A DNA stretch of 64,000 nt, from the sequence record PV745554.1, one strand, 5' to 3'. How positions within the stretch are numbered: the stretch's first letter is position 1; the number at the start of each line of letters is the position of its first letter. Positions 5,416 through 56,224 of this stretch are shown here, piece by piece. The position numbers and the translations under genes are program-made. Under the pieces are notes generated by a model that was given only the letters and a program-made list of their open reading frames with translations, had not been told where the DNA came from and did not search any database.

Positions 5416-6162
5416 GTGTCTTTTGGTCAATTCTCCGCCGACGCCCGCGCCCCGCTGTCGAAATCCGCCATGCTGGACGCCCTCCCCGCCGCGCGCCGTG
5501 ACGCTCTGGTCAAGTCCAGCAAGCCGGCGCGAAACACGCTCGATTACACAACCGCCGACGGCGTGCGCCGCGTGCGCTTGCATGACACCGACGTTTTGAC
5601 GTTCCACGTTAACGGCGCCGTCGAGATCAACACGGGCGGCTGGAATACCCTAACCACGCGCGACCGAATCAACACGTTCGCCCCGCCTCACGTGCGCGTC
5701 TACAGCGACAAGGGCCGCGCCGTGGTTCGCGCCTTGCCGGCCGGTGACGGCGCCGTCACGTGGTCCAGCCCCGCCGCGTCCAAGCCGTTCGCCAAGCGCG
5801 CCACCGTTCACCCGGACGGCCGAATCGAAGTGGACGCGACCGTCAAAGAACTGGAGGCGATTCCTAGCCTCATCCGCCGCTATCTGGAGGCCTTCAAGGC
5901 CGGTTTCCCGTTCAACTCGTCGGGTGACCCGTGGATGACGCCCGGCGCCCTTGTCGCCCCGGAAACCGCCCTTGACTGGCTGGGCGCCGACAGCGGCAAG
6001 CCGTACCTGTTCGACTCGATCCTGTTTCACGCCCATGTCGCGGCCGGCCTGACCGAAGAGGGCGCGGCGTTCTACATGCGCGAGGCCGCCCGGCGCGGCG
6101 TCGACAAATTCAATCTCGGCCGCATCCGGCGTTACCTCAAGCGTTGCCTTCGCGAAGCCTAG
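5416..6162 (+). CDS. Early hypothetical protein (GTG start)
   Basis: AAAGGA RBS; 248 aa. Confidence 0.75.
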   Translation: MSFGQFSADARAPLSKSAMLDALPAARRDALVKSSKPARNTLDYTTADGVRRVRLHDTDVLTFHVNGAVEINTGGWNTLTTRDRINTFAPPHVRVYSDKGRAVVRALPAGDGAVTWSSPAASKPFAKRATVHPDGRIEVDATVKELEAIPSLIRRYLEAFKAGFPFNSSGDPWMTPGALVAPETALDWLGADSGKPYLFDSILFHAHVAAGLTEEGAAFYMREAARRGVDKFNLGRIRRYLKRCLREA

Positions 6163-47100: not shown

Positions 47101-47103
47101 GGC

Positions 47104-47772
47104 ATGTCGACCGACATCACCATGCCGCCTGACACGACGATCTTCGCGGACGTCAAGCTCAATGGCGGAGCCGGCGCGCCCGTCGATCTGGCCGATGGCG
47201 AACTCTACATCGACGAGGCTGGACGCAAGCTCTATGTCGAGACCGTGGTCGGCGTCCAGCCGATCCCGCTCGACGTCGGCTACATCCCGCGCCGGCCCAG
47301 CGGCACGCCGCTCGACCACGTGGTCACCAAGACCGCCACCGGCTCCGAGTGGGGGCCGCTCCAGGGCGGCGCGGGCGGCTCTCCGTTCGACGCGGCTGAG
47401 TTCCGCGTGCCGGGCATCGCGCCCACGGGCCTGGACACGGTCGTTCTGCCGGGCGCGTCCGGTGGCATGGCTCTCTTCGAGATGCCGCTCCAGGACGTCC
47501 TCCTGAGCGTGCGTGTACACGCCTCCGCCGGCGTCGGCGCGGTAACCCTGGGACTCTACCCGTTCAACGGCTCCCTGGGCTCGGAAATCTTCGCCCAGAC
47601 CCTGACGTTCACCGCGCCCGAGACCCAACTGGTGCCCGTCTCCCTGGCCTTGACGCCGGGGGTGTACGCCTGGGTGTGGACGGGGGCGTCCTCCGTGACT
47701 CTGGACGCGGTCAAGGGCTCCCTGCCCTGGGCGACGAGCGAGCAGGTCCACCCCGTGGCGATGAAGTTCTAA
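47104..47772 (+). CDS. Fibre-associated protein
   Basis: 222 aa; LADGELYIDE motif like the fibre C-terminus. Confidence 0.75.
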   Translation: MSTDITMPPDTTIFADVKLNGGAGAPVDLADGELYIDEAGRKLYVETVVGVQPIPLDVGYIPRRPSGTPLDHVVTKTATGSEWGPLQGGAGGSPFDAAEFRVPGIAPTGLDTVVLPGASGGMALFEMPLQDVLLSVRVHASAGVGAVTLGLYPFNGSLGSEIFAQTLTFTAPETQLVPVSLALTPGVYAWVWTGASSVTLDAVKGSLPWATSEQVHPVAMKF

Positions 47773-48548
47773 TGGCTATCCAGAACCCCCACTCCACCAC
47801 GCCGGGCGTCATGCCCCACCTGACGCCGGGCGAGATCGGCGTCAACAAGGCCGATGACATCCTCTGGTTCCGGTCCGAGGGCCGCCGCGTGCCGATCATC
47901 CTGAGCGATCTGGATCGGGCGCCGCCGCTCGACGGCCTGACCGGCGCGCCGCTGACCCTGGAAGGTGGCCAGCCGATCTGGAACGCGCATCTGGCCCCGT
48001 CCTCCGTGGTCAATGGGCAGGTCAAGGTCGATCTGCCGCCGGCGACGGGCCTGCACGCCATGCCCAGCGTCCTGCTGCAAGGCCTGGGAGCCGATCGCGC
48101 CCTGGCGGCCAACGATCTGGACCTCTCGCCCTTCTACGTCCGGTCCGACTCCATCACCCTGACCCAGTTGGCGTTCAGCGTCCGCTCGGCGGGCGCGCCG
48201 GCCATGCGGGTGGGGATCGTCGACAGCTTCGGCGTGGTCCAGGCCGACATTCTGGTCGCCGCGCCCGTGGTGGGCGCCAACGTGGTCAACCTCTCGCCGG
48301 TGCTGACGCTCCAGCGCGGCGTCTACCGCACGATCCTGGCAACCACCGGCGCGGTGACGATCGGGGTGGTCACGGGCGCGCGCATGGAGCAGGGCTGGGA
48401 CATCATCGGGGACACGCCCTCCTTCATCCACGGCTACAGCGGCTCGAAGAACACCGGCGGGGGGATCGGCAGTTTGCCGGGCCTGACCGCGCGGCGCTCG
48501 GGCGTGCCGGGTCAGGATCATTCGGTCCTGATGCGCTGGACGGCGTAG
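47772..48548 (+). CDS. Fibre-associated protein
   Basis: TAATG coupling; LTPGEIGVNKAD motif like the fibre C-terminus. Confidence 0.75.
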   Translation: MAIQNPHSTTPGVMPHLTPGEIGVNKADDILWFRSEGRRVPIILSDLDRAPPLDGLTGAPLTLEGGQPIWNAHLAPSSVVNGQVKVDLPPATGLHAMPSVLLQGLGADRALAANDLDLSPFYVRSDSITLTQLAFSVRSAGAPAMRVGIVDSFGVVQADILVAAPVVGANVVNLSPVLTLQRGVYRTILATTGAVTIGVVTGARMEQGWDIIGDTPSFIHGYSGSKNTGGGIGSLPGLTARRSGVPGQDHSVLMRWTA

Positions 48549-48650
48549 TGGGGAGAGCCGGGTGGGGCTTTGTATCGCTGGGGGAGCGAGGGACGGGCCG
48601 CTCCCCGGCGGCCCACCCGCTCTTTATAGACGGCCCTTTCCCGGCCCGCA

Positions 48651-48667
48651 AGACGTGAATCTTGACA
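48651..48667 (+). promoter_or_regulatory. Late-type promoter motif
   Basis: AGACGTGAATCTTGACA. Confidence 0.7.
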
Positions 48668-48720
48668 TGGTGGAAGATCGGGGTTAACCTGCGCGCTCAT
48701 CTGGAGTTTCGAGCGCCACC

Positions 48721-48984
48721 ATGGCTGAGCTTGTCCGCATCTATCACCCTGAGACGAACGAGCCGTTCGACGTGATCCCGTCGACCGCCGAACGTCTGCG
48801 CCTGGGTGATGGTCCCGACGGGCTGGTCTGGCTCTCGCAGCCCTTCGAGCGCGTCGCTGTCGAAGCCGCGCCGGAAGCCCCCAAGGGGCGAGGTCGTAAG
48901 CGCGTCAGCGCGCCCGTCTCGGAAGAAGCCGAAGACGACGGGTGGCGTGACGTGCCGACCGAGGAAGATCGCGAAGCCGCGTAA
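48721..48984 (+). CDS. Hypothetical protein with KGRGRKR motif and acidic tail
   Basis: TGGAG RBS; 87 aa. Confidence 0.7.
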   Translation: MAELVRIYHPETNEPFDVIPSTAERLRLGDGPDGLVWLSQPFERVAVEAAPEAPKGRGRKRVSAPVSEEAEDDGWRDVPTEEDREAA

Positions 48985-49028
48985 GGCGCTTCGTCTTCCA
49001 CTCTGCTGAAATTCGGTCTCAGTCCCAT

Positions 49029-49104
49029 GTCGGTCTAGCTCATGGGGTAGAGCGGCGGTCTCCAAAACCGCGCGTGGCAGGTTCGAGTCCTGCGTCCGGC
49101 GCCA
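49029..49104 (+). tRNA. trnW: tRNA-Trp(CCA)
   Basis: Cloverleaf; GCGGT-CTCCAAA-ACCGC; TTCGAGT T-loop; encoded CCA. Confidence 0.92.
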
Positions 49105-49108
49105 TTTC

Positions 49109-49183
49109 GCATCCGTAGTATATAGGTGATTACAGCGCGTTGCCAACGCGTAGAGTCGGGTTCGAGTCCCGACGGATGCTCCA
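49109..49183 (+). tRNA. trnG: tRNA-Gly(GCC)
   Basis: GCGCG-TTGCCAA-CGCGT; acceptor GCATCCG/CGGATGC; CCA. Confidence 0.92.
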
Positions 49184-49187
49184 TTTC

Positions 49188-49261
49188 GCGGGTATAGCTC
49201 AAAGGGAGAGTTGCTGCCTTCCAAGCAGAAGATGCGAGTTCGAGCCTCGCTATCCGCTCCA
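49188..49261 (+). tRNA. trnG: tRNA-Gly(TCC)
   Basis: CTGC-CTTCCAA-GCAG; CCA. Confidence 0.92.
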
Positions 49262-49555
49262 ACCTCGTGGTGAGGTGAGAACGCCCTCCTCATGCACCGC
49301 TTCGGCGGTAAAGTAGGCTCCAGCCGAAGAGATGCGGGACCAGGGGACCCCGCCACCACGAACGAAGTGCGCCCCAGGTACGCCTCTGACCGAGAAAGCC
49401 CGCTGGCCGTGGGTGAAGTGTATGGTCAAGCGTCTGGGTCCCCGTCCGCCAGGACCGGCGAAGGCCATATGCGCCGAATTCCTGGACCGGATCGTAGGAG
49501 GGGAGCGTTGGCGCCGGCCCAGCAGGGAAGGGTGAAGAGCCCAGCCGGCAATTTT
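49262..49555 (+). ncRNA. Candidate structured non-coding RNA
   Basis: No credible ORF; ACCGC-TTCG-GCGGT hairpin; GGGGACCC/GGGTCCCC long-range pair; CCAGGA/TCCTGG stem. Confidence 0.35.
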
Positions 49556-49569
49556 CTTCAACAACAAGC

Positions 49570-49598
49570 TTGACAGCCGTCGAGTTTCGTGAGAGCCT
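49570..49598 (+). promoter_or_regulatory. tRNA sub-operon promoter 1
   Basis: TTGACA-17nt-GAGCCT; near-identical layout to the promoter at 50186. Confidence 0.72.
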
Positions 49599-49608
49599 CC
49601 TCAACATT

Positions 49609-49671
49609 ATGACGCACCTCCTCACCCGTTACGAACGCGAGGCCACCGGCCTCGATACCACCACCGCCTAA
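49609..49671 (+). CDS. Putative leader peptide 1 (MTHLLTRYEREATGLDTTTA)
   Basis: Starts ~4 nt after the predicted TSS; carries GAA, GAG and GAT codons upstream of tRNA-Glu and tRNA-Asp; overlaps alternative hairpins. Confidence 0.55.
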   Translation: MTHLLTRYEREATGLDTTTA

Positions 49672-49703
49672 AAGCGGTTTTGGTCCGAGGCCTCTTGTGA
49701 TGT

Positions 49704-49781
49704 GGCCCGGTCGTCTAGCGGTTTGCAGGATTCCTGACTTTCAATCAGGAGAGCGGAGTTCGAGTCTCCGTCGGGCTTCCA
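49704..49781 (+). tRNA. trnE: tRNA-Glu(TTC)
   Basis: CCTGA-CTTTCAA-TCAGG; CCA. Confidence 0.92.
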
Positions 49782-49806
49782 CACCCCCAACTCATCTCTG
49801 AGCTTT

Positions 49807-49881
49807 GGTGCCGTCGTATATGGGTTATTATCACCGGCTGTCTCCCGGTGGAAACGGGTTCGAGTCCCGTCGGCATCGCCA
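49807..49881 (+). tRNA. trnD: tRNA-Asp(GTC)
   Basis: ACCGG-CTGTCTC-CCGGT; acceptor GGTGCCG/CGGCATC; CCA. Confidence 0.92.
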
Positions 49882-49944
49882 GCCCTCGCAGCAAATCCAG
49901 GTTCCAGCGCGGCTGTTCCGCGCGCCTGCATGCACGAGGCTACC

Positions 49945-50166
49945 ATGTTTTTCGATCCCTCCTCGCAGTCGAGCGACGCGCTCCTGCGCCACGTCTCCAC
50001 CCAATCTCCGTATGCGGAAGCGGCTCGCACCGAGTTGCTGTCCCGAGGCCTCGTTCCGCTCCTGACGCGGTTCAACGGCTGGCGCCTCGCCCCGAGCGCG
50101 CCGTTTCCGCAGCACCTCATCCCGCGCCCCGATCCGCTCGCGAAGTACACGTGGCGGGCGGGATGA
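49945..50166 (+). CDS. Hypothetical protein within the tRNA cluster
   Basis: GAGG RBS; 73 aa. Confidence 0.55.
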   Translation: MFFDPSSQSSDALLRHVSTQSPYAEAARTELLSRGLVPLLTRFNGWRLAPSAPFPQHLIPRPDPLAKYTWRAG

Positions 50167-50185
50167 AAAATATTCACCACGACGC

Positions 50186-50214
50186 TTGACATCCGTCGGG
50201 AGTTGTGAGAGCTT
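50186..50214 (+). promoter_or_regulatory. tRNA sub-operon promoter 2
   Basis: TTGACA-17nt-GAGCTT. Confidence 0.75.
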
Positions 50215-50307
50215 ATGGACTGTCACGGATCACGACACTCCTCGGAGTGCAAAAGCGTGATCCTTCGTTTTTCACGGCCGCCAGCGGGTGGCCAGTCGAG
50301 AGTTGTC

Positions 50308-50445
50308 ATGTTCGCCTTGTCGCATCTCAGCCTGAGCACGAAAGCCGCCTCCCCGGCGACGCTTTCGCTTGCCCTGCTGGCGACGGCCGCGAAGCCCTCG
50401 ACCAAGCCGACCACCTCGGCCTCGCACTCGACGGAGACCCACTAG
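50308..50445 (+). CDS. Leader peptide 2 (45 aa; 42 codons are A/L/S/H/T/K/P)
   Basis: MFALSHLSLSTKAASPATLSLALLATAAKPSTKPTTSASHSTETH; the residue set equals the downstream tRNA set. Confidence 0.85.
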   Translation: MFALSHLSLSTKAASPATLSLALLATAAKPSTKPTTSASHSTETH

Positions 50446-50547
50446 GGCTCTCGTCTCGGGTGCAGGCCTTGGAGCCGCACCCGCTACCTACATCCTGTAG
50501 ACCTAGCGCAAGGCGGCTCCTCACCAGGGAGACCGCCTTTTCTTTTT
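50419..50547 (+). promoter_or_regulatory. Attenuator 2 (alternative hairpins plus terminator)
   Basis: Hairpin 50419-50467 around the stop codon; CGGGTGC/GCACCCG (50457-50483); antiterminator GGAGCCGC(50471-78):GCGGCTCC(50513-20); terminator 50510-50547. Confidence 0.82.
50510..50547 (+). terminator. Rho-independent terminator between leader 2 and its tRNA operon
   Basis: AAGGCGGCTCC...GGAGACCGCCTT followed by TTCTTTTT. Confidence 0.88.
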
Positions 50548-50559
50548 CGCGTTGATCAT

Positions 50560-50635
50560 CGGGGTGTAGCTCAGTCGGTAGAGCGCTCGGTTCGGGACCG
50601 AGAGGCCGTGGGTTCGAGTCCCGCCACCCAGACCA
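50560..50635 (+). tRNA. trnP: tRNA-Pro(CGG)
   Basis: CTCGG-TTCGGGA-CCGAG; CCA. Confidence 0.93.
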
Positions 50636-50642
50636 ACGCCAT

Positions 50643-50719
50643 CGGGATGTAGCTCAGTTTGGGAGAGCGCGCGGCTGGGGGCCGCGAGGCCGCAGGTTCA
50701 AGTCCTGCCACCCCGACCA
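50643..50719 (+). tRNA. trnP: tRNA-Pro(GGG)
   Basis: CGCGG-CTGGGGG-CCGCG; CCA. Confidence 0.93.
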
Positions 50720-50724
50720 ACAAC

Positions 50725-50797
50725 GCTGTTGCGCGTGGCTTCGCGCCCACCCCTTGGTATGGGGCGGTAGAAGGTTCAATTCCTTCCAGCAGCACCA
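50725..50797 (+). tRNA. trnT: tRNA-Thr(GGT), atypical D-arm
   Basis: CCCC-TTGGTAT-GGGG; acceptor GCTGTTG/CAGCAGC; TTCAATT T-loop; CCA. Confidence 0.78.
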
Positions 50798-50802
50798 ACA
50801 AC

Positions 50803-50872
50803 GCCGATGCCTCTGGGAGGACGCGCCTTTCGTAAGGGTGCGAGGTGGGTTCAATCCCCACTTTCGGCTCCA
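50803..50872 (+). tRNA. trnT: tRNA-Thr(CGT), short D-arm
   Basis: CGCCT-TTCGTAA-GGGTG; CCA; 70 nt. Confidence 0.78.
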
Positions 50873-50927
50873 TCAAACAGCCTGCGGGCTATATCGGAGA
50901 TCAAGTTTCATAGCCTCCAGGCTATAT

Positions 50928-51014
50928 GGATGTGTCACCTCAGTGGCGAGAGGAACGGGCTCTTAATCCGTCAGCGCAAGCTCACCGTGGGTTCGAGTCC
51001 CACCACATCCTCCA
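50928..51014 (+). tRNA. trnK: tRNA-Lys(CTT) with long variable arm
   Basis: ACGGG-CTCTTAA-TCCGT; acceptor GGATGTG/CACATCC; 87 nt. Confidence 0.88.
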
Positions 51015-51019
51015 ACAAT

Positions 51020-51109
51020 GCACAAGTGACCCGAGCGGCGAAGGGCGTCGACTTTTAATCGACTAGGCGTCCAGCCTCACCGAGGGTTCGAGTCCCTCCT
51101 TGTGCTCCA
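51020..51109 (+). tRNA. trnK: tRNA-Lys(TTT) with long variable arm
   Basis: GTCGA-CTTTTAA-TCGAC; acceptor GCACAAG/CTTGTGC; 90 nt. Confidence 0.88.
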
Positions 51110-51112
51110 TGT

Positions 51113-51199
51113 GCGAATGTGGCGGAACTGGTAGACGCGCCGGCCTCAGGTGCCGGTGCCCTTCGGGGCGTGTGGGTTCGAGTCCCACCTTTCGTACCA
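51113..51199 (+). tRNA. trnL: tRNA-Leu(CAG)
   Basis: CCGGC-CTCAGGT-GCCGG; class II variable arm; CCA. Confidence 0.93.
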
Positions 51200-51206
51200 A
51201 CGACAT

Positions 51207-51294
51207 GCCTTGCTGGCGGAAGTGGTAGACGCACTGTTCTCAAAAAGCAGGCCGGGCGACCGGGCTCTGGGTTCGATCCCCAGGTGAGGCACCA
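51207..51294 (+). tRNA. trnL: tRNA-Leu(CAA)
   Basis: CTGTT-CTCAAAA-AGCAG; CCA. Confidence 0.92.
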
Positions 51295-51301
51295 AGACTG
51301 A

Positions 51302-51389
51302 TGCGAAGTGGCGGAAACTGGTAGACGCACCGGCATGAGAGGCCGGCGCCCTTCGGGGCGTGAGGGTTCGAGTCCCTTCTTCGCGACCA
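51302..51389 (+). tRNA. trnL: tRNA-Leu(GAG)
   Basis: CCGGC-ATGAGAG-GCCGG; CCA. Confidence 0.92.
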
Positions 51390-51392
51390 ATG

Positions 51393-51454
51393 TCCCGATC
51401 GGGAAGATTCCAGGCGGCGCGGCGCTCGCGACACCCGGATTTTCCCGATCGGGA
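51393..51454. repeat. Two copies of the palindrome TCCCGATCGGGA in a tRNA spacer
   Basis: 51393-51404 and 51443-51454. Confidence 0.8.
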
Positions 51455-51469
51455 AGACGACGAGATTAT

Positions 51470-51540
51470 GCTGATCGCCGCTGGGCGGGGAGCGGGTTGT
51501 GTCCCCGCTAGGCACGGTTCGATCCCGTGGGTCAGTACCA
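51470..51540 (+). tRNA. trnH: tRNA-His(GTG), atypical D-arm, A73
   Basis: GCGGG-TTGTGTC-CCCGC; acceptor GCTGATC/GGTCAGT; ACCA. Confidence 0.8.
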
Positions 51541-51545
51541 GATAC

Positions 51546-51616
51546 GGGGTATGCGCAGGGCGCAGGCATCCTTTGCAAGGAAGTCGGGGTGGGTTCGAGT
51601 CCCACATACTCCACCA
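51546..51616 (+). tRNA. trnA: tRNA-Ala(TGC), atypical D-arm
   Basis: TTTGCAA loop; G3:U70 in GGGGTAT/ATACTCC; ACCA. Confidence 0.85.
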
Positions 51617-51620
51617 ACAT

Positions 51621-51710
51621 GGAAGGTCAACCGGACAGGCGCGCCGGGACTGCCTCGAAAGCAGATCGCACTCTCCGGGGTGTGGGGATCGAGACCTCGG
51701 CCTTCCTCCA
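51621..51710 (+). tRNA. trnS: tRNA-Ser(CGA)
   Basis: CTGC-CTCGAAA-GCAG; long variable arm; CCA. Confidence 0.9.
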
Positions 51711-51714
51711 ATAT

Positions 51715-51804
51715 GGTGAGCGAACGGGACAGGCGTGCCCGGTCCGCCTGGAAAGCGCGACGCACTCTCCGGGGTGTGGGATTCGAGTTCTCCGCTCACC
51801 GCCA
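51715..51804 (+). tRNA. trnS: tRNA-Ser(GGA)
   Basis: CTGGAAA loop; long variable arm; GCCA. Confidence 0.9.
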
Positions 51805-51808
51805 ACAG

Positions 51809-51898
51809 GGTAGGCGAACCGGACAGGCGCGCCGGCGCCGTTTGCTAAACGAGCGGCACTCTCCGGGGTGTGGGATTCAAGCTCTCCGCCTACCGCCA
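51809..51898 (+). tRNA. trnS: tRNA-Ser(GCT)
   Basis: TTGCTAA loop; long variable arm; GCCA. Confidence 0.9.
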
Positions 51899-52174
51899 TT
51901 TTGATGTTGACGCCGGCCAGCACCGATGTCATACGTCACGACAGAGCCAACGCCCTCGGCCGGGTTGGTGGATGTGCCGGTTGCATCGCGCCCCGTCGAG
52001 CCCTAGTAGCTCTTGCCGTGGAGTTTTCCGCCTCCCTCCCAGACAAGGAGGCGGACCCCTACATCGCGATCCAGTGATCGTCGGCGACGGGCGCCGTCAG
52101 AGCCCCTTGCGCGCGGGAACGCTGCGGAGGGGATCGTCCCGACCACATTTTTCGACCCACGTTAACTTTTCTTC

Positions 52175-52203
52175 TTGACCTTCCCGAAAACGTAGTGTAG
52201 CTT
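52175..52203 (+). promoter_or_regulatory. tRNA sub-operon promoter 3 (leaderless transcript predicted)
   Basis: TTGACC-17nt-TAGCTT; ATG 8 nt after the -10 and no Shine-Dalgarno. Confidence 0.72.
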
Positions 52204-52210
52204 TCCCGTC

Positions 52211-52306
52211 ATGAGCAAGTCGTACCGTCAATTCGTGCAGATTCAGGTCGTCCGGAATTTCCGGGCGGGCCGTTCGCGCATGGATGATGGCGGGACCTTT
52301 ATCTAG
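52211..52306 (+). CDS. Leader peptide 3 (MSKSYRQFVQIQVVRNFRAGRSRMDDGGTFI)
   Basis: Codons 5-18 are all decoded by tRNAs of the downstream operon. Confidence 0.85.
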   Translation: MSKSYRQFVQIQVVRNFRAGRSRMDDGGTFI

Positions 52307-52372
52307 GTCCAGACACCTCAACCCAATTCGCGAAAGGCCCGCCTGGACACCCAGGCGGGCCTTTTTCTTTTT
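52261..52372 (+). promoter_or_regulatory. Attenuator 3 (antiterminator vs terminator)
   Basis: 52261-52278 pairs 17/18 with 52329-52346, overlapping the terminator 5' arm. Confidence 0.87.
52333..52372 (+). terminator. Rho-independent terminator between leader 3 and its tRNA operon
   Basis: AAAGGCCCGCCTGG-acac-CCAGGCGGGCCTTT followed by TTCTTTTT. Confidence 0.92.
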
Positions 52373-52429
52373 CCGTTTCGCTGATCCGCAGGAGATCGCA
52401 GATGAACAACGGGGGCTAGTCCTCCACAT

Positions 52430-52514
52430 GGATGCTTAAAGCTGGAGGGCTCCAGCCGGGGGCTGTAAACCCCCTCTCTTCGGAGGAGTGGTTCGATCCC
52501 ACAAGCATCCACCA
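52430..52514 (+). tRNA. trnY: tRNA-Tyr(GTA)
   Basis: GGGGG-CTGTAAA-CCCCC; variable arm; ACCA. Confidence 0.92.
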
Positions 52515-52519
52515 ATCAT

Positions 52520-52595
52520 GGACTCGTAGCTCAGCAGGTAGAGCGCCGGCTTGAAACCCCGGAGGTCGGAGGTTCGATTCCTCCCGTTTCCACCA
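52520..52595 (+). tRNA. trnF: tRNA-Phe(GAA)
   Basis: TTGAAAC loop; ACCA. Confidence 0.9.
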
Positions 52596-52600
52596 ACAAC

Positions 52601-52676
52601 GCCCGATGAGCCAGATGGGAAGGCACCGCTTTGACATGGCGGCATTGAGAAGGTTCGATTCCTTCATCAGGCACCA
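52601..52676 (+). tRNA. trnV: tRNA-Val(GAC)
   Basis: CCGCT-TTGACAT-GGCGG; ACCA. Confidence 0.9.
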
Positions 52677-52681
52677 ACCAC

Positions 52682-52757
52682 GCAAGTGTAGCTCAGTTGG
52701 TAGAGCAGCGGACCGATAATCCGCCCGTCCCTGGTTCGAGTCCAGGCATTTGCACCA
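52682..52757 (+). tRNA. trnI: tRNA-Ile(GAT)
   Basis: GCGGA-CCGATAA-TCCGC; ACCA. Confidence 0.92.
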
Positions 52758-52764
52758 TTTCTGA

Positions 52765-52840
52765 TGTGGCATAGCTCAGGGGTCAGAGCGCGCGCTTGAT
52801 AAGCGTGAGGTCGGTGGTTCGAGACCACCTGTCACTACCA
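52765..52840 (+). tRNA. trnI: tRNA-Ile(GAT), second copy
   Basis: CGCGC-TTGATAA-GCGTG; ACCA. Confidence 0.9.
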
Positions 52841-52874
52841 ATTCCCAGGCCCGGTGGAGATGCGCCGGTTCTGT

Positions 52875-52948
52875 AGGCGATTAGCTCAATGGTAGAGCAG
52901 GGGTGCCACATACCTCGGTCGTAGGTTCGATTCCTACATCGCCCACCA
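52875..52948 (+). tRNA. trnV: tRNA-Val(CAC)
   Basis: GGGGT-GCCACAT-ACCTC; ACCA. Confidence 0.88.
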
Positions 52949-52954
52949 ACATGT

Positions 52955-53028
52955 TGAGGGTTCGTCTAACGGTAGGACGCCTGGGTCTGGTCCAGGTAAT
53001 CTAGGTTCGAGTCCTAGCCCCTCATCCA
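52955..53028 (+). tRNA. trnQ: tRNA-Gln(CTG)
   Basis: CCTGG-GTCTGGT-CCAGG; TCCA. Confidence 0.9.
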
Positions 53029-53034
53029 AGTTGT

Positions 53035-53108
53035 TCTCGGGTCGTCTAATGGTAAGACATCTGGTTTTGGTCCAGAGGATTGGGGTTCGATTCCTTGGCC
53101 GAGAGCCA
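53035..53108 (+). tRNA. trnQ: tRNA-Gln(TTG)
   Basis: TCTGG-TTTTGGT-CCAGA; GCCA. Confidence 0.9.
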
Positions 53109-53125
53109 ACTGCTTTAGAGTTCAT

Positions 53126-53200
53126 TCCAGTCAATGCACAAGGTGTGCAGCGGCACTGTTAATGCCTGTGAGCCCGGTTCGATTCCGGGGTCTGGAGCCA
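53126..53200 (+). tRNA. trnN: tRNA-Asn(GTT)
   Basis: GGCA-CTGTTAA-TGCC; GCCA. Confidence 0.9.
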
Positions 53201-53225
53201 ACACGCCGGCCAAGGCCGGTCATGC

Positions 53226-53308
53226 GCCCTGGTAACCGAGGGGGATTACGAATCCCTTAGTCGTAGCAGGAGTTGAAAAGGGTGGTTCGAATCCACTCCA
53301 GGGTGCCA
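53226..53308 (+). tRNA. trnR: tRNA-Arg(ACG)-like, lacking a normal D-arm, long variable region
   Basis: GGGGA-TTACGAA-TCCCT; acceptor GCCCTGG/CCAGGGT; TTCGAAT T-loop; GCCA. Confidence 0.68.
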
Positions 53309-53315
53309 AATCTAT

Positions 53316-53398
53316 AGCGCGCAGGCCGATCAGGATCATCGTCAGGCGTCGCCCTCCGAAGGCGAAGAGGCCCGGTTCGAGTCCGGGGCGCGCTGCCA
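53316..53398 (+). tRNA. trnR: tRNA-Arg(CCG) with enlarged D region
   Basis: TCGCC-CTCCGAA-GGCGA; acceptor AGCGCGC/GCGCGCT; GCCA. Confidence 0.82.
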
Positions 53399-53401
53399 AC
53401 T

Positions 53402-53479
53402 GCGCGGGTAGCTCAACGGAACCAGAGCAGCCGTCTTCTACACGGTGGGTTGGGGGTTCGAGTCCCTCCCCGTGCGCCA
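53402..53479 (+). tRNA. trnR: tRNA-Arg(TCT)
   Basis: GCCGT-CTTCTAC-ACGGT; GCCA. Confidence 0.92.
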
Positions 53480-53816
53480 AAACTTGACGGGCAATGCCGA
53501 ATCGCCCAACTTCGACCCTGGCTCTCGGTGGGCCACGATTGCACGCCGTCGGTGCCCTGGCCGTACACCCAGGGAGCAGCCCGGCGGCGTTCCAACACGG
53601 TTTCTGGACGATCTTCGAACGCGGCTTGCCGTGGAGGGGTGCTGGATAGGGCCGAGGTAGGAGGAACCATCGAGCATCTCCTAATCCCGGCCTGGGCCTC
53701 CTGGGGGCTCCGCTGGGTCGATCAGGGCCTGACCCGACCCCGGAGATGCGCCGACCTAGATCACCCAGGATCGCTGGGTCGGTTGAAAGGGTCTGAAATT
53801 TTCTGGCTCCTATGTG

Positions 53817-53946
53817 TTGACACGCATTTCGGAGCCGGCTACAACCCTCCTCGTAGAGCGGCGCTGGGGCCTGAAGGCCCCAATCGTTGAGCCTCTGCGT
53901 TGTCGTCAGAAACGGCCCGCCGGCATCCCGCCGCGCGGGCCGTTTC
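53817..53946 (+). ncRNA. Candidate small RNA with its own promoter and a terminal hairpin
   Basis: TTGACA at 53817; TGGGGCC-TGAA-GGCCCCA hairpin; GAAACGGCCCGC...GCGGGCCGTTTC hairpin (53909-53946). Confidence 0.4.
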
Positions 53947-53985
53947 GTCATGGGCGTCATGCGACCTTGAGTCCACCGTGGGTAG

Positions 53986-54002
53986 TGTCGTGAATCTTGA
54001 CT
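53986..54002 (+). promoter_or_regulatory. Late-type promoter motif
   Basis: TGTCGTGAATCTTGACT. Confidence 0.72.
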
Positions 54003-54070
54003 TTCGACCACCTTTCCGGTAGCTTCCCCTTCATCACCAACGCTCATAAGTCGGGGACTAGAGAGCCGAT

Positions 54071-54469
54071 ATGTCGCAAGACCACACCGGCTCCGCAACG
54101 CAGAGCCAAGAACACATCTTTCGTAAGCTGGATGAGCTTGGCGCAATGCACATGCGTACCCGCGAGGACATGGCCGAAGTCAAGGAGAAGGTGAAGACCA
54201 TCGCCTCCTCTCAGGAGCGCTTTGAGCGCGACGTTTGGCGCGAGATGGACATTCGCCACGCCGAGACCAAGGAGCAACTGGCCGCCATCAAGAATCAAAC
54301 CGCCGATCGGATCGACGAGATCGAGGCCAAGGTGAACACCATTCGCGAGGAGCGGATCGCCGAAAAAGCCCAGTGGCGTGGCCCCGAGAAGGTCATTGCC
54401 GGCATCGTCGCCCTGGCGGGCGGCGTCACCGCGATCGGCGTTCTCTGGAGCATCTTCAAACCCCACTAA
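54071..54469 (+). CDS. Coiled-coil protein with a C-terminal TM helix (holin-like candidate)
   Basis: Heptad-rich body; VIAGIVALAGGVTAIGVLWSIF. Confidence 0.7.
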   Translation: MSQDHTGSATQSQEHIFRKLDELGAMHMRTREDMAEVKEKVKTIASSQERFERDVWREMDIRHAETKEQLAAIKNQTADRIDEIEAKVNTIREERIAEKAQWRGPEKVIAGIVALAGGVTAIGVLWSIFKPH

Positions 54470-54574
54470 GCCTACAGTCAAGCTTGTTCGCCTGCGGCCA
54501 GAAGTCGCGGTTCTTGACACCCCCCAGCGGCCCGAGCTAACCATAGGGTCATCTGTTCCTGGGGAGTTTCCTAG

Positions 54575-54796
54575 ATGGCTGCTGCGCTTACCCTCGTCTC
54601 CTGCGAGACGAACTTTTCGACCACCACGGACACCGATCCGGACGCGGCGCACGAGCGCCTCATTCTGGTCCTCAACACCGCCTCAGAAGCGGGCCTTGGT
54701 GAAATGACGTTGGAAGTCAAAGAAGAGATCGAGGCCCTGCTCAAGCAGGCGTCTATCGAACTCTCGAACTGCCGGATCGTGGGGGGAGTTCCTTAA
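54575..54796 (+). CDS. Hypothetical protein
   Basis: GGGGAG RBS; 73 aa. Confidence 0.62.
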   Translation: MAAALTLVSCETNFSTTTDTDPDAAHERLILVLNTASEAGLGEMTLEVKEEIEALLKQASIELSNCRIVGGVP

Positions 54797-54818
54797 TCGC
54801 CATCCCAGAGGGAGCGAC

Positions 54819-55685
54819 GTGTCCGAGTCTTCCGAATTCAACCCGCTCGACCAATCCCAGTTCCCTCCTCGCCTCACCAAGGCTGCTGCGCGTCAGGCGC
54901 GGCGCCAGGAGCGCAGCCAGAAAAAGGACCCCACGGCGAACAAGCCCAACTACAAGGCGCTCGAAGCCAAGACTGAACGCCAGAAGCGCTACATCCAGGC
55001 GCTGAAGGCCGGCGAGAGCGCCATCGCCATCGGCGGGGCCGGCACGGGGAAGACCTACATCCCGTCCCGGCTCTTCGCCAAGAAGCTGATCGAAGGCAAG
55101 ACCGAACGCCTGATCATCGCCCGCGTCACCGCCTCGCGGGCCAAGCACGCCCTGGGCTTCCTGCCCGGCAAGCTCGAAGCCAAGCTGGCCCCGTGGCTGG
55201 TGCCGGTGATCGAGGGCGTCAAGGCGGAAATGAACGCCCAGACCTATACGCAGTTGCAGGAGGCCGGCAAGATCGAGTTCGCCTCCTTCGAGCACATGCG
55301 CGGCCGGACCTTCGGCGAGTGCTGCGTCCTGCTGGACGAGGCCCAGAACGCCGACTACAAGGACCTGAAGATGGTCCTGACCCGTTGGGGTGAGAACGCC
55401 CAGTACGCGGTCACCGGCGACGTCGACCAGATCGACGTGGACGACTCCGGGCTGGACACGGTCATCGACATCGTCGAGGCCAACGACATCCCCATCCACG
55501 TCATCGAGTTCACCGACGAAGACGTCGTGCGCTCGCCCATGGCCAAGGCCTGGGTCAAGGCCTTCTCCGCCCACGAGGGCAAGGACGGCCGGCCCCGGCG
55601 CTTCCACCGCCCGGCTGTCAGGAATCTTGACGCTTTGCCGGCGTTCATCGATAATGGCCATGTCACGAAACCCGTGGCATCGTGA
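54819..55685 (+). CDS. phoH: PhoH-family ATPase
   Basis: GGAGTGKT Walker A; LGFLPG; HMRGRTF; LLDEAQN; GDVDQID; DVVRSP. Confidence 0.95.
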   Translation: MSESSEFNPLDQSQFPPRLTKAAARQARRQERSQKKDPTANKPNYKALEAKTERQKRYIQALKAGESAIAIGGAGTGKTYIPSRLFAKKLIEGKTERLIIARVTASRAKHALGFLPGKLEAKLAPWLVPVIEGVKAEMNAQTYTQLQEAGKIEFASFEHMRGRTFGECCVLLDEAQNADYKDLKMVLTRWGENAQYAVTGDVDQIDVDDSGLDTVIDIVEANDIPIHVIEFTDEDVVRSPMAKAWVKAFSAHEGKDGRPRRFHRPAVRNLDALPAFIDNGHVTKPVAS

Positions 55686-55686
55686 C
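55616..55686 (+). promoter_or_regulatory. Late-type promoter motif plus a 25-bp palindrome variant inside the phoH 3' end
   Basis: TGTCAGGAATCTTGACG (55616-32); GTCACGAAACCCGTGGCATCGTGAC (55662-86). Confidence 0.62.
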
Positions 55687-55702
55687 AAAGACGTAGAGCA
55701 CC

Positions 55703-56224
55703 ATGGCCTTCACCTTCGTTGTTGAGACCGGCGCCGGCGACCCGGCCGCGAACTCGTACTGCGACGTGCAGTTCGCGGACGACTACATCTACGCCAACGT
55801 CTACTCGAACACCGCCTGGGCCGCCTTGGAGGACGAGGACAAGGAACGCTTCCTGGTCCGCGCCTCCAAGTACCTGGACCGGACGGTGCAATGGGCGGGG
55901 GAGAAGATCGAGGAGGACTCCGGCCTGCGCTGGCCGCGCGCCGGGGTCTATGACGTCGACGGCTTCCTGATCCCCAGCGACGCCATCCCGCAGCAGTTGA
56001 TGGAGGCCACCGCCGAAATGGCGGCGGCGCTCCTCAACAACGACTGGACCTCGCCGCAGACCACGCGCGGCATGAAGGAAATCCAGGTCGACGTCATCGA
56101 ACTGAAGTTCGACACCGAGGTCCAGCGCGGCTCGATGCCGGACATCGTCATGCAAATCCTGGAGGGCCTGGGCGTGGTCAAGACCGGCCAGCGCCCGGCC
56201 TTCAAGAAGATCATCCGGCACTAA
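55703..56224 (+). CDS. Head-tail adaptor (DnaT-like phage neck family)
   Basis: ANSYCDV...RASKYLD...WAG...GLRWPRAGV...IPQQLMEATAEMA. Confidence 0.85.
   Translation: MAFTFVVETGAGDPAANSYCDVQFADDYIYANVYSNTAWAALEDEDKERFLVRASKYLDRTVQWAGEKIEEDSGLRWPRAGVYDVDGFLIPSDAIPQQLMEATAEMAAALLNNDWTSPQTTRGMKEIQVDVIELKFDTEVQRGSMPDIVMQILEGLGVVKTGQRPAFKKIIRH

Follow-up and report, generated by a model that had tools for sequence, protein, structure and literature searches.

Leader-peptide attenuators are represented by trpL, hisL, pheL, leuL and thrL, and by the multivalent leaders of ilvGMEDA and ilvBN (studied by Yanofsky and by Landick and Turnbough). In this work a putative attenuator of this type, termed leader 3, is described ahead of an operon of 12 tRNA genes in a window of 64,000 nucleotides, which is identical to bases 1-64000 (the left end) of the genome of Caulobacter phage BL64 (PV745554.1, Poindextervirus rogue). 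Phage tRNAs are usually viewed as constitutive codon-usage supplements, or as replacements following losses to host decay or defence, and they have been proposed to offset host tRNA decay or anticodon-nuclease defence; to our knowledge, the control of their levels is largely unknown. The features described below suggest that leader 3 is probably a ribosome-dependent leader-peptide transcription attenuator, which gates the tRNA operon by reading the supply of those same tRNAs. BL64 is a CcrRogue-like relative of phiCbK, displaying 100% identity to CcrRogue, RBC8 and RBC11 over the stretch tested, and leader 3 belongs to a 4.5-kb tRNA region (49029-53479) located upstream of the PhoH and head-tail adaptor genes. 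Met and Cys are the only amino acids for which a phage tRNA is missing in the window.

Sensor codons of leader 3 and the downstream tRNA genes

The coding features of leader 3 and its operon are as follows.

52175-80 and 52198-203, + strand: promoter-like site read from the sequence, with -35 TTGACC, a 17-nt spacer and -10 TAGCTT
52211-52306, + strand: leader 3 open reading frame (ORF), 31 codons without Shine-Dalgarno, encoding MSKSYRQFVQIQVVRNFRAGRSRMDDGGTFI and then a stop codon
52223-52264, + strand: sensor run, codons 5-18, YRQFVQIQVVRNFR, with 14/14 codons read by the downstream tRNA set
52430-53479, + strand: leader 3 tRNA operon, 12 genes (Tyr-GTA, Phe-GAA, Val-GAC, two Ile-GAT, Val-CAC, Gln-CTG, Gln-TTG, Asn-GTT, Arg-ACG, Arg-CCG and Arg-TCT)

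The leader 3 ORF is positioned 124 nt upstream of the first tRNA gene, in the same predicted transcript, and inspection by eye revealed no promoter-like site between the leader 3 terminator and tRNA-Tyr. Relatives carry an annotation for this ORF, as a hypothetical protein, in RBC57, Domovoi and Kabachok only. An initial annotation of this DNA had placed the ATG at a predicted transcription start site lacking a Shine-Dalgarno sequence, and the A of the ATG is indeed found 7 nt past the TAGCTT hexamer of TTGACC-N17-TAGCTT, so that a leaderless transcript is predicted. The promoter-like site is not listed by a consensus scan because its -10 hexamer is weak. That leaderless mRNAs are common in Caulobacter, as was also proposed, agrees with the 375 such mRNAs of C. 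crescentus, which display a translation efficiency equal to that of led ones (PMC4117421), and leaderless translation in this host is plausible.

Codons 5-18 of the ORF are, letter for letter, those initially reported. They sample 10/11 of the downstream anticodons through the residues Tyr, Arg, Gln, Phe, Val, Ile and Asn. When codons were classed by whether they belong to the 19 read by the leader 3 tRNA set, which account for 30% of the 15,076 codons in annotated BL64 genes, the sensor was the longest in-set run of the window in six frames (14 codons, with a runner-up of 9). The chance of a 14-codon in-set run is 0.301^14 = 5e-8 per position, corresponding to ~0.004 expected runs over the window's ~128,000 codon positions, and coverage of at least 10 anticodons by 14 in-set codons has a p of ~0.003 when codons are drawn at genome frequencies. 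Rare A/T-ending codons are over-represented (3-6 versus 1.8 expected) and ATT, which represents 6% of Ile codons, is invariant.

The tRNA content of the operon required closer definition, as default ARAGORN reports nine genes 3' of leader 3, namely Phe-GAA, Val-GAC, two Ile-GAT, Val-CAC, Gln-CTG, Gln-TTG, 'Ile-AAT' and Arg-TCT. Four further identities, not called as such by default ARAGORN or Rfam, belong to non-canonical tRNA genes: Tyr-GTA (52430-52514), Asn-GTT (53126-53200, the gene that default ARAGORN names 'Ile-AAT'), Arg-ACG (~53224-53308) and Arg-CCG (~53315-53398). Free folding of the Tyr, Asn and Arg-CCG genes generated cloverleaves presenting odd D arms, anticodon loops with these anticodons and an encoded 3' CCA. 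In the case of Arg-ACG, free folding recovered the acceptor stem and CCA; visual inspection was used to assign the ACG loop and T arm. The odd D arms of the Tyr, Asn and Arg genes consist of long stems and tiny loops. Annotated homologues of Asn-GTT, Arg-ACG and Arg-CCG are present in CcrPW, and of tRNA-Tyr in the Brevundimonas phages Gurke and Bajun. The initial count of 10 of 11 anticodons, with Arg-TCT alone missing, therefore holds because the non-canonical genes are backed by cloverleaf folds and by homologues annotated in relatives.

Default ARAGORN also misses Thr-CGT (50802-50871) and three Ser genes (51621-51898) elsewhere in the tRNA region, and the BL64 record leaves all of the missed genes unannotated. 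According to the phiCbK genome paper (PMC3556154), Tyr and Thr tRNAs are missing from every phage, Asn is confined to Colossus and RNA elements besides tRNAs went undetected. The leaders can assist annotation independently, since they list Tyr, Thr and Asn, amino acids for which non-canonical tRNA genes can be found in the clusters. The phiCbK counterpart (5578-5655) of BL64 Arg-TCT (53402-53479) has the anticodon TCC (Gly), which looks like an anticodon switch and explains why phiCbK was reported without an Arg tRNA.

Conservation of the leader was followed over 12 lineages, with the Caulobacter phages represented by Rogue/BL64, BL10, BL57, the phiCbK group, Magneto, RBC57, Colossus, PW and CcrSC, and the other lineages in the comparison by the Brevundimonas phages Gurke, Bajun and Domovoi/Kabachok and one metagenomic contig. 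The latter, a new lineage in which the pattern matches, was retrieved by a protein search with the 44-residue Domovoi annotation. In 12 lineages TTGAC is located 36-37 nt 5' of the ATG, with the spacing TTGAC-N17(18)-hexamer-N7-ATG kept, and the ORF comprises 31-32 codons with fixed start and stop positions. The sensors of relatives comprise 14-15 residues, all belonging to {Y,R,Q,N,V,I,F}, in an order that differs. Nine distinct sensor peptides were identified, among them YRQFVQIQVVRNFR, YRQFVRQIQVVRNIR, YRQFVRQIQFVRVNR, YRNNVRQIRVRQFN, YRQNVQNIRVVRFYR and YRNNVQQIQVVRFNR. At least 13/15 inferred sensor replacements stay in-set, compared with 23% of non-synonymous single-base neighbours (P ~4e-7). 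These observations suggest that the sensor is selected for composition and not for sequence order.

A chance resemblance produced by post-hoc choice of the codon set has to be considered, as the set was defined after the sequence had been viewed and four of the tRNAs are non-canonical calls. The probability of such an explanation is negligible given the rarity of in-set runs calculated above, the finding that other in-set runs of the locus are shorter than the sensor in 11/11 relative loci scanned, the fit of a second leader to a different set and the covariation of codons with tRNA content, both described below.

Alternative RNA helices and the proposed mechanism

Leader 3 contains the following RNA elements.

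52234-56, + strand: segment 1, the anti-antiterminator 5' strand, with an inner stem CGTCCGGA at 52249-56 and an outer stem at 52234-38
52260-80, + strand: segment 2, or arm A (52261-78 in the initial annotation), with segment 1 or segment 3 as alternative partners
52282-52325, + strand: antiterminator apical hairpin from per-lineage folds, with an inner stem pairing 52293-98 and 52305-10
52329-46, + strand: segment 3, or arm B, serving as antiterminator 3' strand and terminator 5' strand
52351-65, with a T-tract to 52372, + strand: segment 4, the terminator 3' strand, from a terminator scan

The antiterminator helix formed by 52261-78 and 52329-46 comprises 16 Watson-Crick pairs, one G-U pair and one G/A mismatch, in agreement with the 17 of 18 paired positions and single G-U previously described. 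The terminator is G+C-rich, extends from 52332 to 52365 and is followed by the T-tract. Its existence and U-tract stand as first reported, with a stem counted here as 15 pairs, not 14, and the annotations of phiCbK, Swift and Colossus list it as a rho-independent terminator. The initial annotation missed the covarying anti-antiterminator provided by segment 1, which overlaps the sensor codons and completes the trp logic. Its inner hairpin pairs CGTCCGGA (52249-56) with TCCGGGCG (52260-67) at -13.4 kcal/mol (RNAfold), and an extended stem, found unprompted by RNAalifold, joins 52234-38 to 52276-80, such that segment 1 can sequester all of arm A. With segment 1, arm A, segment 3 and segment 4 in place, leader 3 displays the four-segment organisation of trp-type attenuators. 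Arms A and B are separated by 50 nt that fold as a hairpin, and the BL64 stop codon (52304-06) occupies the 3' edge of its apical loop.

Pairing was evaluated in an 11-lineage alignment, using as controls helices in which the partner was slid by one to three columns. Compensatory changes affect 3 pairs of helix 1:2 and 3 pairs of the terminator 3:4, with overall pairing at 93% and 96%, respectively. The antiterminator 2:3, whose covariation across related phages had been named as a check, is conserved in register, with 83% pairing and 5 compensatory pairs. Slid controls of the three helices display pairing of 28-68%, and at most 52% for 2:3. The changes in 2:3 are G-C to A-U (Bajun, CcrSC), G-U to U-A (Colossus) and U-A to C-G (BL57, Magneto, RBC57). 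RNAalifold recovers 1:2 and 3:4 independently. Register-specific pairing combined with three-way changes affecting arm A, segment 3 and segment 4 is what an alternative-pairing switch would be predicted to display. The apical hairpin is located in the same place in 13/13 sequences, with stem sequences that differ between lineages in per-lineage folds, and in 13/13 sequences the stop codon lies 25 nt past arm A and at or close to the apical loop, inside which it falls in most lineages. In a scan of IMG/VR with the conserved arm-A motif GCGGGCCGYTCGYRCRTG, the isolates BL10, Rogue, Colossus and Karma were the only genuine matches, the 19 others being chance ones inside genes.

These data bear on two further explanations of the locus. 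In the first, leader 3 would be an ordinary small phage gene, the hairpin would end its own or an upstream transcript, the tRNAs would be expressed through constitutive leak-through or another promoter and the codon match would be incidental. Such a gene would accord with the hypothetical protein called by some annotators and with the terminators ahead of tRNA clusters that are annotated without comment in phiCbK, Swift and Colossus. It is nevertheless highly unlikely, as the peptide conserves its composition and not its order and no promoter-like site separates the terminator from tRNA-Tyr. In addition, the conservation of the C-terminal 'AGRS..' coincides with arm A, which argues for a constraint on the RNA, arm A covaries with segment 3 where segment 4 is unchanged, as in Bajun, and a second leader carries a complementary amino-acid set for its own cluster. 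In the second, the open frame would be a by-product of an untranslated RNA switch binding a tRNA (T-box-like) or a protein, for which three mutually exclusive helices would be enough. This reading has very little probability, since the Rfam scan, even at E<=1, yielded neither a T-box nor any other cis-regulatory family, and the open frame and its start and stop positions are fixed in 12 lineages. Moreover, the part of the sensor upstream of 52234 displays a restricted codon set with no conserved pairing, and the promoter-to-ATG spacing is fixed at the leaderless value.

Folding of the transcript is consistent with the attenuator reading. The full leader 3 transcript adopts the 1:2 helix plus terminator at -79.6 kcal/mol, a state favoured, when unmasked, by roughly 20 kcal/mol, and, with the 3' end set at 52346, the A:B fold is obtained in every case in which arm A is free. 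Stalls were simulated by masking 28 nt as a ribosome before folding. The terminator state falls to -58 to -61 kcal/mol for masks that place codons 10-13 in the A site, and with codon 11 there the antiterminator becomes the minimum-energy fold. A ribosome mask over segment 1 thus renders the antiterminator equal to or better than the terminator state, and A-site occupancy at 10/14 sensor codons keeps arm A fully free.

In the proposed mechanism, host RNA polymerase would start at, or within one base of, the A of the ATG at 52211, producing a leaderless mRNA on which a 70S ribosome would translate the 31-codon ORF and sample Tyr, Arg, Gln, Phe, Val, Ile and Asn at codons 5-18. When decoding is fast, the ribosome would cross arm A and reach the stop codon in the apical hairpin; behind it 52234-56 would re-pair with arm A (52260-80), 3:4 would form and transcription would terminate at the T-tract, ~52372. 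When a sampled aminoacyl-tRNA is scarce, the ribosome would linger with its A site at about codons 9-14, covering segment 1 and leaving arm A free to pair with segment 3 (52329-46), which would block the terminator and allow polymerase to enter the tRNA genes. The predicted outcome is a demand-driven, self-limiting production of tRNA. From the sequence we infer where transcription starts, that the ORF is translated, that polymerase pauses and in which direction control operates. The trp-like logic first suggested for this leader is supported at the sequence level by helix conservation, covariation, ORF conservation and mask-and-fold simulation, and that interpretation is strengthened by the 1:2 element and by the second, independent leader.

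Other leaders of the tRNA region and direction of control

The tRNA region (49029-53479) is divided into three groups, {W,G,E,D}, {P,T,K,L,H,A,S} and {Y,F,V,I,Q,N,R}, which cover 18 amino acids with zero overlap. The remaining features are listed below.

50308-50547, + strand: leader 2 attenuator, with an ORF at 50308-50445, an antiterminator arm at 50471-78 and a terminator at 50510-39 followed by a T-tract
49609-49700, + strand: Glu/Asp leader, with an ORF at 49609-49671 encoding MTHLLTRYEREATGLDTTTA and then a stop codon, located 5' of tRNA-Glu and tRNA-Asp
52390-52419, + strand: mini-ORF between the leader 3 attenuator and tRNA-Tyr, AGGAG plus ATG AAC AAC GGG GGC TAG (MNNGG and a stop codon), with a strong Shine-Dalgarno

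Leader 2 precedes a cluster at 50560-51898 comprising two Pro, two Thr, two Lys, three Leu, one His, one Ala and three Ser genes. Its ORF, encoding MFALSHLSLSTKAASPATLSLALLATAAKPSTKPTTSASHSTETH and then a stop codon, is annotated as a hypothetical protein and preceded by a promoter-like TTGACA at 50186-91. Forty consecutive leader 2 residues fall within the amino-acid set of its own cluster, the longest such run of the window (the next is 23), and the codons cover 14/14 anticodons (p ~0.003). Leader 2 codons also follow tRNA content. In 9/9 lineages AAA, which represents 3% of Lys codons, is found once wherever a Lys-TTT gene is present and never with Lys-CTT alone, and CcrSC, the sole phage in which tRNA-Trp has moved into the leader 2 cluster, has the sole leader 2 with a Trp codon. 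The correspondence is less readily followed for Gln, Arg, Ser and Thr, where a U34 tRNA serves both codons and non-canonical tRNAs go undetected. In the Brevundimonas counterparts of leader 2 the antiterminator and terminator arms are of different sequence. The 5' untranslated region (UTR) of leader 2 (~90 nt) contains, at 50228-50273, an 8-bp stem GGATCACG/CGTGATCC around a small hairpin, followed by TTCGTTTTT; the hairpin is kept in relatives, and the T-run after it is not.

The Glu/Asp leader is organised differently. Its stop codon falls within the apical loop of a long hairpin that resembles a terminator and bears that annotation in phiCbK and Swift, and a covarying small 6-bp antiterminator hairpin overlaps a Glu codon. 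No enrichment of Glu/Asp codons was observed in its ORF. A sensor role is weakly supported for this leader, and its geometry suggests a different, possibly opposite, logic.

The same hardware could operate with opposite polarity, as a translation-competence check in which efficient translation would lead to read-through and a starvation stall would switch tRNA synthesis off, a phage analogue of stringent control. The Glu/Asp leader provides the basis for this proposal, as its ORF enters the terminator 5' arm and ends in the apical loop, where a close-following ribosome would block the terminator, and a ribosome stalled on the Glu codons would mask the small antiterminator. The masking of arm A by stalls at codons 15-18 of leader 3 would be in line with it, and the folds of leader 2 and of the Glu/Asp leader yield no polarity. 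This alternative is nonetheless unlikely for leader 3, where the sensor codons overlie segment 1, not the terminator, arm A remains fully free at 10/14 occupied codons and a mask on segment 1 tips the energy towards the antiterminator, a geometry that is that of the trp, his and phe attenuators.

Several observations count against leader 3 as an attenuator induced by scarcity of its own tRNAs, or against the extension of that logic to other tRNA groups. In the mask simulations, stalls at codons 15-18 would cover arm A and stalls at codons 5-8 spare the inner 1:2 hairpin; a ribosome on the stop codon leaves arm A uncovered, so that termination in the replete state depends on refolding of 1:2. 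The leader 3 sensor omits Arg-TCT in every case, and the CGG codon is absent from the Colossus and PW sensors although PW encodes Arg-CCG. In leader 2, six GCC codons are unread by Ala-UGC under strict wobble, with no Ala-GGC tRNA present, and the tRNA reading the ACC codons of the CcrSC leader lies outside that cluster, exceptions which indicate that the match to amino acids is firmer than the match to anticodons. Because the lineages are related, shuffle-based covariation statistics exaggerate their independence and are not probabilities. The Trp/Gly tRNA cluster has no comparable leader, and no comparable leader ORFs were found upstream of the tRNA groups of RcXuper, a distant Rhodobacter phage that has the virion module in common and many tRNAs. 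Finally, a phiCbK RNA-seq paper leaves tRNAs and terminators unmentioned.

On balance, the evidence leans slightly towards CbK-like phages running a closed-loop 'tRNA homeostat', with one sensory ORF per tRNA operon, about one codon per encoded isoacceptor and read-through set by ribosome transit time, so that the phage would top up exactly the tRNAs limiting for decoding. If so, limitation could arise, for example, from late-gene demand, host tRNA decay or host anticodon-nuclease defence, and a stall-induced attenuator would suit compensation for the latter two. These would be the first tRNA genes autoregulated via translation of their own codons, through a direct feedback mechanism that widens attenuation from amino-acid supply to isoacceptor supply, and the grouping of phage tRNAs into operons by amino acid would be explained. 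The leader would then constitute a ready-made natural sensor of isoacceptor-specific decoding capacity, and its ~160 nt a compact natural part that could possibly serve as a reporter of such capacity in Caulobacter.

Further elements were observed in the region. The leader stop codons at 52304-06, 50443-45 and 49669-71 are each located in, or at the loop edge of, a covarying hairpin, a recurring design for which ribosome parking, a pause signal or the joining of arms are possibilities. The mini-ORF at 52390-52419 is found as MNNGG and a stop codon also in BL57, Colossus and PW and as MTGGD and a stop codon in Brevundimonas phages, is absent in phiCbK, and its stop codon again lies inside a hairpin loop in BL57 and Colossus. 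Promoter-like sites resembling TTGAC-N17/18-(T/G)AGCTT are distributed across the region at 48660, 49571, 50186, 52175, 53815 and 53997, often with a T-rich stretch 5' of them, and each leader has one ahead. Directly 3' of tRNA-Gly-TCC, Rfam identified a match to the skipping-rope RNA (RF02924) at 49265-49361, with 45.8 bits versus a gathering score of 36.7.

Comparison with known regulatory systems

A cmscan search of 47000-56000 at E<=1 revealed no leader family (Trp_leader, His_leader, Leu_leader, Thr_leader), T-box or other cis-regulatory family at leader 3. The sub-threshold matches obtained there, ctRNA_pGA1 (27.7 bits, gathering 45), ctRNA_p42d and HepC_CRE (24 bits, gathering 140), are due to the terminator hairpin. 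Neither leaders nor attenuation are described for phage tRNA genes in the full-text literature searched, the phiCbK genome paper or the phiCbK RNA-seq paper mentioned above.

T-box riboswitches resemble leader 3 in that tRNA status is sensed, translation-related genes are controlled and the output is a choice between terminator and antiterminator. In a T-box, uncharged tRNA is bound by the RNA itself, which contacts it with a single specifier codon and the T-box sequence, and no ribosome is involved. Leader 3 contains no T-box motif (stem I, specifier loop or T-box sequence) and no Rfam T-box match, and its antiterminator is a plain 18-bp helix. The control of tRNA and rRNA promoters by ppGpp/DksA in the stringent and growth-rate responses likewise couples stable-RNA synthesis to translational status. 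This system acts globally at initiation and represses on starvation, in contrast with leader 3, which would act per operon, after initiation, in a codon-specific manner and probably by induction.

Mycobacterial leaderless poly-Cys short ORFs control the translation of cysteine-metabolism genes through sequestration of the ribosome-binding site (Canestrari et al., 10.1101/834739). Leader 3 resembles them in that a short sensory ORF, predicted here to be leaderless, opens the operon and in that stalling would remodel the downstream RNA. The mycobacterial ORFs sense one amino acid and control translation, whereas leader 3 has an intrinsic terminator before non-coding tRNA genes. In E. coli pheST, with its pheM leader, a component of the translation apparatus is attenuated via cognate amino-acid codons (mentioned in PMC3082878), similar to the arrangement proposed here; unlike leader 3, pheST encodes a synthetase and senses one amino acid in an indirect loop. 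A possible precedent, a Phe-rich attenuator leader before the E. coli tRNA-Phe genes pheU and pheV, was dropped from the comparison, as pheV, the gene examined, lies ~8 nt past its promoter and has no leader.

The leaders of amino-acid operons display the closest correspondence. They have in common with leader 3 a short ORF rich in regulatory codons, with the sensor codons positioned over segment 1, as well as the alternative pairings 1:2, 2:3 and 3:4 and an intrinsic terminator followed by a T-tract, and several amino acids are sensed together, as in the thr and ilv leaders. Leader 3 differs from this class in its targets, as the downstream genes are 12 tRNAs and not biosynthetic enzymes, the genes of the class being those that make or charge the sensed amino acid. 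It also samples seven amino acids and about ten isoacceptors with one or two codons each and no homopolymeric run, is phage-encoded and predicted to be leaderless, presents no sequence or Rfam similarity, and places its stop codon in the antiterminator apical hairpin, not beside segment 2. Regulation of tRNA genes through their own codons would represent a new form of leader-peptide attenuation. In function, leader 3 most resembles the multivalent thr and ilv leaders and, with every structural hallmark of such attenuators present in its sequence, would belong with leader-peptide attenuation.

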